From: Camelus ferus | Taxonomy: Eukaryota | DNA: 64,000 nucleotides | Direction: 5' to 3' | Assembly (NCBI RefSeq): GCF_009834535.1 | Contig: NC_045700.1 | Span: 46,190,001 to 46,254,000, forward strand | In this document: positions 13,375 to 61,059 of the stretch, one piece after another | Layout of the letters: the number at the start of each line of letters is the position of its first letter | Numbering within the stretch: the first letter of the stretch is position 1 | Position numbers and translations under genes: made by a program | The notes under the pieces: generated by a model | Databases searched by the model: none | Told to the model about the DNA's origin: nothing | Seen by the model: only the letters and a program-made list of their open reading frames with translations

Positions 13375-13473
13375 AGTGTGTATGTATGTGTTTGTGTGTG
13401 TGTTTGTACATGTGTGTATGTATCTGTATATATCTCTGTACGTATGGGTGTGTACGTATGTATCTGTGTGTTC

Positions 13474-13500
<27 letters not shown>
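13375..13500. repeat. TG/TA-rich low-complexity tract ending in about (TG)13
   Basis: Seen directly; pure GT run at 13474-13500. Confidence 0.95.
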
Positions 13501-13504
<4 letters not shown>

Positions 13505-16171
13505 TGGGGGTTGATGGTTAAGAAACTCTGGGAGGGGAGTCAGTAGAGCAGGTCTCCAGGGAGAGGAGCCCTGGTGATACATCCCATTTTTAGGAGTAAA
13601 TGATGAAACAATGGTGGAGCTGTAGACGTAAAAAGAGAAAGAAGAAAGAACCAATTGTAGGAAGAGTTTACAAGAGTGCCTTCATGAACTCTTTGTAGAA
13701 CTTTCATCCATAAGTGATGTCTGTTCTTCTGAATTCATATTTTCTTCTTCCATATTTTAATTGTGTTTCTTACCACATTTCCCCTTGATAATTGCTGTAC
13801 ATTCACAGTTCTCCCTTACTCAGTTTTAACTTCCTTGGTGCAAGAACTGTGGTCCCTGTGTCACCGGAGTGCTTTATTCTCTCGTACAGATACTCAGTAA
13901 ACGTTTGCAGATCAAAAAAAAATGCATTTTCAACACCTTCTTTCTGAATTTTGTTGATGTTGTTGGGAAACCTTGTAATTAGCAAAGAGTCAACACTTCA
14001 GTATTCTACATGGTTAATAATCATATAATTAAAATGATAACATGATAAGTGGTAAACATCTTGAGTTTCAAAGACTTTTGATATATCCATGTCATCACTG
14101 GCATTATAAGTACACATGATTTTAGCATACTAATACTCACCTAGCCTCTGTGTAAAATGTTTTTGCTGCTGAGATAGAGTTCAGAATACCTGCTTCATCT
14201 AACTGGGCTGTGATGATTAACATTTCAAAGCCCTTTGAAAAGTTAATAGTATTACAAAAAGGCTGAGATTATCAAGTACATAGTGTTTGAGATCTTACTG
14301 TTGTTATAATAGAGAGAGAAGAATATACATGCACACCCATCTATAAACCTTCAACAATTCAAGAGAATTCTATTACATATATTTTAAGCACTTTCTTCAT
14401 TGCTTTCATTGGATACTTCTTTTAAAAGTCTTTCTGGCTAATGATGATGATGAAGATAATGGTACTCTTAATAAGAAGAACTTCTGTAGCCTTTTATAAT
14501 TTATAATGCTCCCATATATTATTTCGGATCTAATAGCTCATTAGGAGTGGGACTAGCTCTTCATATCCCTGAGTCACTGTCTGTTAAAATACGAGTCAAA
14601 ACAAACTGCAAAGTCATTTTAATGCAAATGTATTTGTTTAGCATTACACCCAATGTACTGAAATACATTTACTCATCTTCAAAAGACATCTGTAAATTAA
14701 AAAAGAGTACAAGTGAAGTAGTTGAGGAAATTAAGCATTACATACATTCCTGCAAGATGCCAGCGCTATTACAGCCTGTTACTGCTGTCCATTTCTTGGC
14801 TAAGCCTCCTGTTCATGACTTTGGGAAGGCAGCTGGGCAGAGTGGTTTTGCCTCCCCTCCCTTCCTGCACCTGCTCAGGTCCGACTGCTGGGTGTTGGAA
14901 TCCACTGTCCCCAGAGGTCCCCCAGAGCTTCTGCAGAAAGTAGCACCCAGGGACTTACTCAGCAGATTAATGGGGGGGCTGGTCATCCTCGTGGCAGAGA
15001 GTTTGCAAATATTATCATACAGACAGACACAGGAGTCATCTAAAGGGAGATGTTTTGCTGATTTTATGGCTAATGTACATTTCACCCCACAAATGCCTGT
15101 GTGTTATTATTTTGTGCTCTGACTAGTACAGAAACTGGTTAATTAGTCCCTAGATAATCCCAAATTGGCTGAATTAAGATTTAAGAGCATAATTTCTACA
15201 CTGTATAATGCATGTGAGCAGCACCTGGAATCCAGAGCATTTGCCCTCCTTCGTACACCTGACTTTGGTAGTTTCCATTCTTGCTTCTTTGGGTGATAAA
15301 ACAAGGTACAGCCTAGAATGTTGTGGGTGCCCCCATTACGGTCCTTACCATACAGTGTTCTGATTTTGGCTACATGGCTCCCTTCCCCACTGGACTCTGA
15401 GCTCCTGCGGGGTAGGGTTGGTGCTTGCTCGCCTCTGTCCTTCCAGGAAAGGCATCTAATGTAGGTAGGAAAGCAATACAGTTTACTGAATGGATAAATA
15501 AAATGAATGTGCCCTCATGAAAGGATGCATTTGGTGGAGATTTATTTAAAATTCCATGCATTTTGATAATTCATATTGCAAAGTTAAGTCTTATGTATTT
15601 GAATGCCATTAATTTGAAAGGTTGATGTGACAAAAGGTTATAAATCAGTGTTAAAACCTACTCCTTTCAAGATCATAAACACATTCTAATAACATAATCT
15701 TTTTGGGTACTGCTAATAGGCATTATTTACCATGACAATTTATATAGTACTTAAAAGAACTTTATTTTATCAAAATATTTTTAGTTTGTGTCTTTTGCTA
15801 ACTCAGATGGGTTAACCTCTCTGCCTAACCTTGCTGTCTGATTTAGAAAGTTTTCAATGACAGTGAAACTCATCCTAGAAGAGTTGAAGAACTATGAGAA
15901 GGAAAGAAAAGAAAGTTGGAAAACAGCAATTCAGTGGTTTTTATAAAACAAGACCCAAATAGTATTCATCAATGAATGAATAGAAAAATGATAAAACTTA
16001 CGTGCATGACATGTGAAATAATAAAATAGGGAGATAATAAGCCAAAATGAAAAATGTTGTCAATTGGACTTCAGAGAAGAATGAGAACATTGTAAGGAAA
16101 AGCTCCATGAAGGAAGTGAACCCTAAGCTTGTCATAAGGAAATAAGCCAGCGTGCGAAGACACTTCACATC

Positions 16172-20846: not shown

Positions 20847-21806
20847 TGTAAAGGAAAAACTCCTCTTCCCGTGCTTCCTTGGTCCTCACACTACTACCAT
20901 ACATTCAACACTTCTGATACCAGATGTGTGGGTTTTCCACACTTAGNNNNNNNNNNNNNNNNNNNNNNNNNNNNNNNNNNNNNNNNNNNNNNNNNNNNNN
21001 NNNNNNNNNNNNNNNNNNNNNNNNNNNNNNNNNNNNNNNNNNNNNNNNNNNNNNNNNNNNNNNNNNNNNNNNNNNCCCCCCAAACATGCACTTTAAGTGC
21101 CAGTCTCAAGTCCAAGTTGTTACCTGTGCTTCTGACCACCTGGCTATAAATCAGAGGTTTCCACAAACCCCTCTTTGGGTTTGATGAATTAGCTTGAGCT
21201 GTTCGCAGGACTCAGGAAAACAATTACTTACTAGATTTATTATAAAAGGATATGGCTCAGGATCAGCCAGACAGAGAGATGTATAGGCACAGTATGGGAA
21301 GGAGCACGGAGCTTCCACACCCTCTTCCAGTGCCACGCTTCCCACATTTCTGACTGTTCGCCAATCCAGAAGCTCTCAGACCTCCGTAGTTCAAGGATTT
21401 TTATGGACGCTTCATTACTGAGCCATGCTTGTTGAAGCGGATTGGCCACTGGTGATTGAACTCAATCTCCAGCTCCTTGGCCCCCATGTCAGGGGGTGGG
21501 GCTGAAGTTCCAACCCTCTGATCACATGATTGGTTCTCCTGGCAACCAGCTCCCATCCTTAGGTTACCTAGGGGTTTTCCAGAAGTCACCTCATCAATGT
21601 AAACTCAGCTGTGGTGCCTTGACACCTATTTCACCTTTATGGCCCTTAAGCATTTCAGGAACTGAGGACAAAAGACCACATATTATAACAAAAGATGCCC
21701 CTATGACTCTCATGTAGGAAATGACAAGAGTTTAAGGAGCTCTGTGCAAGGAACAGTAGACAATTTCTTATTTCTTATTATTTTATATTTCTTATTATAT
21801 ATCACA
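20847..21806. mobile_element. MER21-family solo LTR containing an assembly gap
   Basis: TG...CA termini, near-perfect 5-bp TSD ccatc (20842-20846) / ccatt (21807-21811), and MER21-like text ttctgataccagatgtgtgggtttt...gttccaaccctct.atcacatg. Confidence 0.75.
20947..21075. other. Assembly gap (129 N)
   Basis: Run of n. Confidence 1.
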
Positions 21807-23985: not shown

Positions 23986-24353
23986 TATTTATTTATTTAT
24001 TTGACGACATAAGGAAATAATATGCAGCTAATAAAATTTTATTTTTTTTATTGAAATATAGTTGATTTACAATGTTGTGTTCGTTTCTGGTGTACAGAAT
24101 AGTGATTCAGTTATACATGTGTATATTCTTCTTCATATTCTTTTCCTTTATGGGTTATTATTGGTCCCACCCCGATATGCTGCCTACAGGAGACCCAGGA
24201 GACCCACTTCATGGTGAAGGAGCACATAGATTGAAAGTGAAGGGTTGGGAAAAGATACTTCATGCAAATGGAAATGACAAGAAAGTAGGGGTAGCAATAT
24301 TCATGTCAGACAAAATAGACTTTAAAACAAAGTTCATAAAGAAAAAGAACGAC
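23986..24353 (-). mobile_element. 5'-inverted L1 insertion (3' UTR on -, ORF2 endonuclease piece on +)
   Basis: 14-bp perfect TSD tccatctagttatt (23972-23985, 24354-24367). The + strand piece translates ICCLQET..HRLKVKGWEKILHANGNDKKVGVAIFMSDKIDFKTK, the L1 EN motif. Confidence 0.9.
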
Positions 24354-26197: not shown

Positions 26198-26335
26198 GGG
26201 GGTGGGGCTGGGTGTAGCTCAGTGGTAGAGTGGTTGGGTTCAATCCCCAGTGCCTCCACTAAATAAATAAACAAATAAATAAATAAACCTAGTTACCTCC
26301 TCCCCTAAAAAATTTAAATTTAAATTTAAAAAATC
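26198..26335 (+). mobile_element. Camelid tRNA-derived SINE with an internal deletion
   Basis: gtagctcagtggtagag-tggtt-gggttcaatccccagtgcctcc, then (aaat)n and cctagttacctcc. Confidence 0.85.
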
Positions 26336-26456
26336 AATTAAAAGGACAAATAATCTACAGCCGAGCCCCATGTTTAAGGCAGTACTTCTGAGCCTTTTCC
26401 ATATGTAGCACACTTCAAATGTGAGAAATATTTATGACATACTCAATTTAAGATTT

Positions 26457-26815
26457 TTTTTTGGTGTATATATATATTTATTTATTGAAGTATAGTCAGT
26501 TTACAGTGTGTCAGTTTCTGGTGCACAGCACAGTGCTTCAGTTCTACATGAACATACATATATTCGTTTTCATACTCTTTTTCACCGTAAGTTACTGCAA
26601 GATATTGAATATAGTTCCCTGTGCTATACAGTATGAGCTTGTTGTTTATTGGGTTTTGTAAGGACTCCTCCCGTAGTCTGAAGCGAGAGACACTCTGCCA
26701 GAGTTCAGTAGGTGCTCTGTGTGATTCAGCGGGTTTGTAGATGTAATTCTTGGTGTGTTTGTGGGAGAGGGCGAGCTGTGAGTCTCTCTACTCTACCATC
26801 TTGGCACCCATCCTC
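26457..26815 (-). mobile_element. Internally deleted L1 (5' end fused to 3' end)
   Basis: 15-bp perfect TSD ctcaatttaagattt (26442-26456, 26816-26830). The minus strand starts GAGGATGGGTGCCAAGATGG and ends in the same L1 3' UTR seen at 24047-24160 and 60645-60781. Confidence 0.85.
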
Positions 26816-27189
26816 CTCAATTTAAGATTTAAGTTTCGTAGGAACTTGTGTGCATACTGGAGTTGTGGGCAGTTACCATCTAAAAAGTGGATTGTTGGTA
26901 AGTGGACATGTGGAGTTTGGAGTATACACCCATTGTTACGGAAGGTTAGGGTCTCAGGCCAAGTCCTACTTACTGGATAGTACACTTTTTCTGTGCATCA
27001 GTGCATCGAAAGTTCCATTAGAAACTGCCTGGAGTCTGTGCCTGCCGGCCTGGGTGGTACTGTTCCTCCTCCCCTCTCTCACTGGGCCAGTTTCCTCTTG
27101 GATTGCGGAGAGGGCAAGGGGAGAGGTGGGTCTTGATTGCTGTAAGCTGCCCGAGTTTCCCAGTGGGGCTGAGAATAGCTAGCAACTCT

Positions 27190-40290: not shown

Positions 40291-40453
40291 NNNNNNNNNN
40301 NNNNNNNNNNNNNNNNNNNNNNNNNNNNNNNNNNNNNNNNNNNNNNNNNNNNNNNNNNNNNNNNNNNNNNNNNNNNNNNNNNNNNNNNNNNNNNNNNNNN
40401 NNNNNNNNNNNNNNNNNNNNNNNNNNNNNNNNNNNNNNNNNNNNNNNNNNNNN
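40291..40453. other. Assembly gap (163 N)
   Basis: Run of n. Confidence 1.
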
Positions 40454-60636: not shown

Positions 60637-60926
60637 CTAAAAACTGAAGTATAGTTGATTTACAATGTTGAGTTAGTCTCTGGTGTACAGCATAGTGATT
60701 CAGTTATACAGATGTACTTTCTTTTTCATGTTCGTTTTCATTATAGGTTATTACAAGCTGTTGAATATAGTTTCCTGTGCTGGACCTAAATGAAAGTCAG
60801 AGAAAGAAAGACAAATATATGATGTCACTTATATGTGGAATCTAAGAAAATGACACAAATGAATCTATTTACAAAACAGAAAGAGATTCCCAGAGATAGA
60901 AGACAAACTTAGAGTTACCAAAGGGG
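60637..60926 (-). mobile_element. 5'-inverted L1 insertion (terminal 3' UTR on -, upstream ORF2-end/3' UTR piece on +)
   Basis: 15-bp TSD aataccag(g/a)cat(c/a)tt at 60622-60636 and 60927-60941; inversion junction near 60782. Confidence 0.82.
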
Positions 60927-61059
60927 AATACCAGACATATTTTAAGCAATTCCAAAATGAAAGTATCTGTTATAACATTGTCTTGGAGGTAGAAAATATC
61001 TTGCAGCTGGTCATTCTTACTTTCTAGGTACAGCACCAATCAAATACATGAATCCTGAG

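Follow-up and report, generated by a model that had tools for sequence, protein, structure and literature searches.

Retrotransposed copies of spliced L1 RNAs were reportedly first sighted by Belancio et al. in 2006, and they are known from primates, where they are near full-length and dead on arrival. The human copies, termed SpIREs, number 131 and fall into three classes (97/622, 97/790 and 97/976), all of which use a splice donor at nt 97 (Larson et al. 2018, PMC5860796). Promoter activity of human SpIREs is weak, and those of the 5'UTR/ORF1 class require ORF1p provided in trans (PMC5860796). Here we describe an insertion of 359 nt in a camel genome, found within a stretch of 64 kb that was analysed as a whole (hereafter the window), in which what appears to be the start of an L1 is joined directly to the end of an L1. 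We consider it, with a probability of roughly 0.6, to be a SpIRE-like processed retrocopy of an L1 RNA that was spliced from the 5'UTR to the 3'UTR and mobilised in trans.

The element runs on the minus strand from 26815 to 26457 and is bordered on each side by a perfect 15-nt target-site duplication, AAATCTTAAATTGAG, the sole direct-repeat family that a repeat finder returned from the 651 nt searched (26300-26950). The presence of a perfect 15-mer on both borders of the insert far exceeds what chance would produce. Read along the minus strand, the order is ...ACTT, AAATCTTAAATTGAG, the 359-nt insert and AAATCTTAAATTGAG again, and the pre-insertion site is ...CTT/AAATC..., in which TT/AAAT agrees at 5/6 positions with TT/AAAA, the L1 endonuclease consensus in target-primed reverse transcription (TPRT). 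The two halves of the insert meet at ...AAAACCCA/ATAAACAACAAG and share one orientation, and reading in six frames finds no ORF1 or ORF2 sequence in the 359 nt. Together these features support a single TPRT-type insertion in which both true ends, 5' and 3', are present and the middle is missing. The initial annotation of this DNA had already placed a 359-nt insert with a perfect 15-bp duplication within 26442-26830, and had described about 166 nt of 5' sequence with a YY1-type motif near +12, joined without inversion at 26650/26649 to an L1 3' end with AATAAA and a tail. All of this was reproduced, with the YY1-type box CAAGATGG located at +13 to +20 (Table 1). The join itself also creates an AATAAA hexamer (26650-26645, minus strand), a potential premature poly(A) signal in transcripts of the element.

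Table 1. Features of the mini-L1 insertion and runs of N in the 64-kb window
Feature	Coordinates	Strand	Remarks
N run, 129 nt	20947-21075		
Downstream target-site duplication	26442-26456	-	perfect repeat of AAATCTTAAATTGAG
Short A tail, 6-9 A	26457-26463	-	border between tail and duplication ambiguous by 3 A
AATAAA signal	26486-26481	-	element 330-335; followed by 18 TA-rich nt
3' segment, putative terminal exon (final ~170 nt of L1 3' end)	26464-26649	-	includes AATAAA and 18-nt TA-rich stretch
Junction CCCA/ATAAAC	26645-26654	-	breakpoint 26650/26649
5' segment, 166 nt, putative exon 1 (start of L1-type 5'UTR)	26650-26815	-	
YY1-type box CAAGATGG	26796-26803	-	element positions 13-20
Upstream target-site duplication AAATCTTAAATTGAG	26816-26830	-	preceding bases give nick site TT/AAAT
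N run, 163 nt	40291-40453		

The origin of the 166-nt 5' part is central to how the insertion is interpreted. It has no second copy within the window, and scans of the element for structural RNAs were negative, with a best Rfam match of 20 bits against a gathering score of 95 and no tRNA found by ARAGORN. A relative was sought by way of proteins, since Logan contigs sometimes carry called short spurious ORFs: the open sense frame of the 5' part, 48 codons long, was compared with a representative library of 1.84 billion proteins. One match, P0002 (115 aa; 74% identity over 34 residues), is encoded on a Logan contig of 1,031 nt, L026. At the nucleotide level, L026:675-779 is 89.5% identical to element positions 11-125, apart from one 10-nt gap. 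The homology begins within about 2 nt of the first base of the element, giving the two sequences a common 5' boundary, and it stays collinear to the last 5' base, at lower identity and with differences that are mostly transitions. Beyond the breakpoint L026 continues for at least 212 nt of purine-rich sequence. Because L026 runs past the breakpoint, the 5' half is not a complete small RNA; it is the leading part of a longer repeat whose 5' end is fixed. In addition, the box at +13, which we take to be the counterpart of the human L1 start-site box, lies at a position typical of L1 starts. As L026 ends before any ORF1, the identity of the 5' part as L1 5'UTR is something we infer, from its YY1-type box, from the 5' boundary it has in common with L026 and from the L1 nature of the 3' partner. 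The 115-codon ORF that yields P0002 is carried by L026:820-1031; among 5.8 billion proteins it has no relatives, only P0002 itself being returned, and has probably arisen by chance within an L1 5'UTR.

L026 also shows what follows the 5' part in an uninterrupted relative. Under six alignment scoring schemes, element base 166 falls on L026:819, and GTAGGAGA comes next; at the very point where the mini-element passes over to the L1 3' end, L026 has GTAGGA. This candidate donor fits the splice consensus at -3, -1, +1, +2, +3 and +5 and can be graded as reasonable. The exon end differs between the two sequences, ..CCCA in the element vs ..TCTG in L026; such a CA/TG difference is what CpG decay on opposite strands leaves behind, and it fits an ancestral ..CCG/GTAGGA. 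The last 5' base of the element, an A, may thus be read as the decayed G of CCG/GT. In the 40 nt that lead up to the breakpoint, the element and L026 are only ~55% identical (mostly transitions), and the putative GT donor is supported by this one diverged relative, which is not tied to the camelid source. The initial annotation had proposed that the L1 5'UTR continues as CCG/GTAGG, with CpG decay in the element. L026, the one independent relative recovered, does carry GT(AGGA) after the 5' breakpoint, and the CA of the element vs the TG of L026 fits the proposed decay.

The other half of the element, positions 167-359 (193 nt), is a typical L1 3' end. Within the window it matches L1 3' ends at 60645-60781 and 24043-24144 with about 75% identity. 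The first of these belongs to a composite copy: 60645-60781 is a minus-strand L1 3' end covering positions +24 to +165 relative to the acceptor-equivalent, and it adjoins a plus-strand piece, 60786-60928, that covers positions -209 to -63, with about 87 nt missing between them. The arrangement at 60645-60928 is that of an L1 insertion with a 5' inversion by twin priming. The window holds no L1 copy that spans the acceptor site, and no ORF2 motif. The sequence upstream of the junction-equivalent was taken from metagenome contigs, which were searched with a degenerate pattern or with the 100-codon open frame that spans the junction. This returned 23 host-derived L1 3' regions, none of them a mini-L1. 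Their hosts can be taken to be ruminants, since two of the loci (L011 and L017) carry a Bov-tA-like SINE, and no contig was regarded as human. When the element was compared with these loci by BLASTN, nearly all alignments began at element 166-167, as expected, since a normal L1 has body sequence and not 5'UTR upstream of this point.

In 15 of these ruminant L1 3' regions, the junction-equivalent is preceded by AG in six, by GG in seven and by something else in the remaining two. Within the AG group, L010, L002, L013 and L011 end in TAG or CAG, and in L008 and L015 the AG is displaced by one base; the GG group, of the form ...AATGG, consists of L001, L003, L006, L018, L017, L016 and L022. The 3' part of the element is 73-79% identical to most AG-type copies vs 64-76% to the GG type, and the element shares with the AG type a TAAC.TA block whose GG-type counterpart is TAAA.CA. 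An AG acceptor before ATAAACAACAAG is thus plausible, as judged from ruminant relatives. The acceptor would be weak, because in AG-type copies the run before the AG is A-rich and not pyrimidine-rich. The initial annotation had placed an AG here in the L1 consensus; an AG is present in 6/15 ruminant L1s, and the element is somewhat closer to the AG type, but 7/15 have GG instead.

One sense frame of the 3' part stays open over 54 codons (26488-26649, minus strand), to a point just before AATAAA. In the ruminant L1s (L001-L022) this frame continues upstream, and either ends at the TAG that supplies the candidate AG or reads through TGG; the frame may be what remains of an ORF2 with a longer C-terminus. 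The possibility that ORF2 runs through the junction, raised by the open 54-codon frame, was rejected, as no called protein in the collection searched carries the frame. The tblastn extensions into the 5' part seen with L001, L003, L004 and L007 proved to be ordinary L1 sequence upstream of the acceptor and not homologues of the 5' part.

Further copies were looked for in several other ways. An exact 24-mer from the start of the element had no match in the metagenome contigs, although the start is variable between copies and therefore makes a poor pattern. In prokaryotic-genome and viral contigs, neither a 25-mer conserved between the element and L026 nor the junction-spanning 100-codon frame found a match. 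A protein homologue search with the sense 100-aa frame and an antisense 66-aa ORF gave no candidates, no contigs were found that encode a flanking ORF, and contigs encoding a 184-aa ORF 3 kb away were too short to reach the element. The window also contains a (CA)n-type microsatellite at 13376-13505, which cross-matches simple repeats in several of the fetched contigs. Words sampled from the interval 26200-27050 were also looked up in sequencing runs: 20 runs, drawn from seven studies and labelled organism A or B, contained 77-82% of them, a figure that may include words from other copies. Since the flanks by themselves account for just about 56% of this interval, the insertion is probably present in both organisms.

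If the insert is a retrocopy of a spliced L1 RNA, its history would be as follows. A full-length L1 would have been transcribed from its own start site, and in its RNA a donor directly downstream of nt 166 in the 5'UTR (ancestral CCG/GTAGGA) would have been spliced to an acceptor ..AG/ATAAAC located ~170 nt before the poly(A) site, which would remove the rest of the 5'UTR together with ORF1 and ORF2. Polyadenylation at the L1's own signal would leave an RNA of ~350 nt, and ORF2p (possibly ORF1p too) from another L1 would have copied it in trans, by TPRT at the TT/AAAT nick, creating the 15-nt duplication. Mobilisation must have been in trans under this scheme, because the spliced RNA encodes neither ORF1 nor ORF2; both this step and the AG of the source L1 are what we infer. 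A pair of breakpoints that falls before GT and after AG is expected by chance in ~1 in 256 cases; if the AG holds, this speaks for splicing and against a template jump or a subsequent deletion. The suggestion of a retrotransposed spliced L1 RNA made in the initial annotation is thus borne out in part: a single TPRT-type insertion and a GT at the 5' breakpoint agree with it, while the AG side agrees in only 6/15 relatives. Counting against it, ORF-less L1 RNA was mobilised in trans inefficiently in human assays (PMC5860796). Such events may be recurrent in the camel genome.

Other histories could give the same structure. A mini-L1 might have been founded once, by splicing or by deletion, and have then given rise to a self-propagating, SINE-like non-autonomous family, whose masters would be transcribed from the retained 166-nt segment as a putative promoter and whose RNA would be mobilised repeatedly by L1; most copies would then go back to such masters and not to new splicing events. 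The element is equipped for such a life in that it retains a true 5' end with the YY1-type box as well as an L1 3' end with AATAAA. It is, however, the only copy read, and human SpIREs retaining just the first 97 nt show weak promoter activity and are described as dead on arrival (PMC5860796). Nor would a high copy number call for masters, given that 116 copies of one human SpIRE class arose from recurrent splicing (PMC5860796). We regard this family history as unlikely, though worth keeping in mind. Slightly more doubtful still is its boldest form, in which the mini-L1 would be a living or recently living parasite of L1 built solely from L1's two ends, that is, a SINE-like family of ~360 nt transcribed by Pol II, with copies on the order of hundreds in this lineage and with masters that compete for ORF2p by means of the 166-nt start region and the L1 3' end.

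Splicing could also be dispensed with altogether. In one such scenario the middle would have been lost during reverse transcription: after copying ~190 nt from the 3' end of an L1 RNA, ORF2p would have switched to nt 166, either on that RNA or on a second one. Template switching by this protein is the accepted origin of U6/L1 and other chimeras (10.1101/2025.02.02.635956), the junction has an ambiguity of 1 nt, and the acceptor is unproven. On the other hand, a random landing would fall before GT in ~1 in 16 cases and after AG in ~1 in 16, and jumps usually reach the 3' ends of RNAs, whereas here the jump would have reached an internal base of a longer RNA, as the continuation of L026 indicates. 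A jump of this kind seems improbable. More improbable again is that the head of a non-L1 transcript was joined to a 5'-truncated L1 3' end, or that a full-length L1, once inserted, had its middle removed by a genomic deletion. These two options gain from the fact that no recovered sequence links the 5' part to ORF1 and from the lack of another copy of the 5' part in the window. A non-L1 head, however, fits poorly with the L1-typical position of the YY1-type box, with a second locus (L026) that has the same 5' boundary, and with the negative Rfam and tRNA scans, and a later deletion of ~6 kb would have to end exactly at the GT and at the AG-equivalent, a double coincidence.

A spliced L1 retrocopy in camel would have implications beyond this locus, which for the host is just another intronic insertion, putatively antisense in RAPGEF4 intron 3. 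If this reading is true, usable splice sites exist in L1 transcripts outside primates too, and non-coding L1 RNA can reach the germline genome in trans, perhaps repeatedly. Should the junction turn out to be multicopy, it would offer a natural measure of the trans-mobilisation of L1-derived RNA, and it might exemplify how splicing of a LINE gives rise to a non-autonomous element. It would also form a class that repeat-masking programs break up into two pieces of L1, as if these were unrelated.

The putative spliced mini-L1 shares features with several described classes of L1-dependent sequences. Like processed pseudogenes, it would derive from a spliced, polyadenylated Pol II RNA without machinery genes that was copied by L1 in trans and that left target-site duplications and an A tail, but its template would be L1's own transcript, with the L1 start site and the L1 3' end. 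HAL1 is likewise derived from L1, has lost ORF2 and depends on L1, yet HAL1 retains ORF1, whereas the mini-L1 retains no ORF. SINEs and SVA are also short, non-coding, A-tailed and mobilised by L1; the mini-L1 differs from them in having no tRNA, 7SL, 5S or snRNA head and in that both of its ends appear to derive from L1. A foreign 5' segment and an L1 3' end in the same orientation inside one pair of duplications, a layout like that of the insert, occur in U6/L1 and other small-RNA/L1 chimeras. In those chimeras, a complete small RNA is joined at its own 3' end and the point of L1 truncation varies, while the 5' partner in the mini-L1 breaks off within a longer RNA, immediately ahead of GT.

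The likeness to human SpIREs covers several steps of the proposed pathway: an L1 RNA spliced from an early donor in the 5'UTR, endonuclease-dependent TPRT, target-site duplications, an A tail and a true 5' end. The differences lie in the donor, which is at nt 166 in the mini-L1 vs nt 97 in human SpIREs, and above all in the extent of the loss. In human SpIREs the loss amounts to 0.5-0.9 kb, is confined to the 5'UTR or reaches into ORF1, and leaves ORF2, and in most cases ORF1, in place. In the mini-L1, by contrast, ~6 kb would be gone, including both ORFs, and with 359 nt left, all steps after splicing would have to take place in trans. The element is thus best filed as an extreme variant of the SpIRE, joined from 5'UTR to 3'UTR with both ORFs gone.
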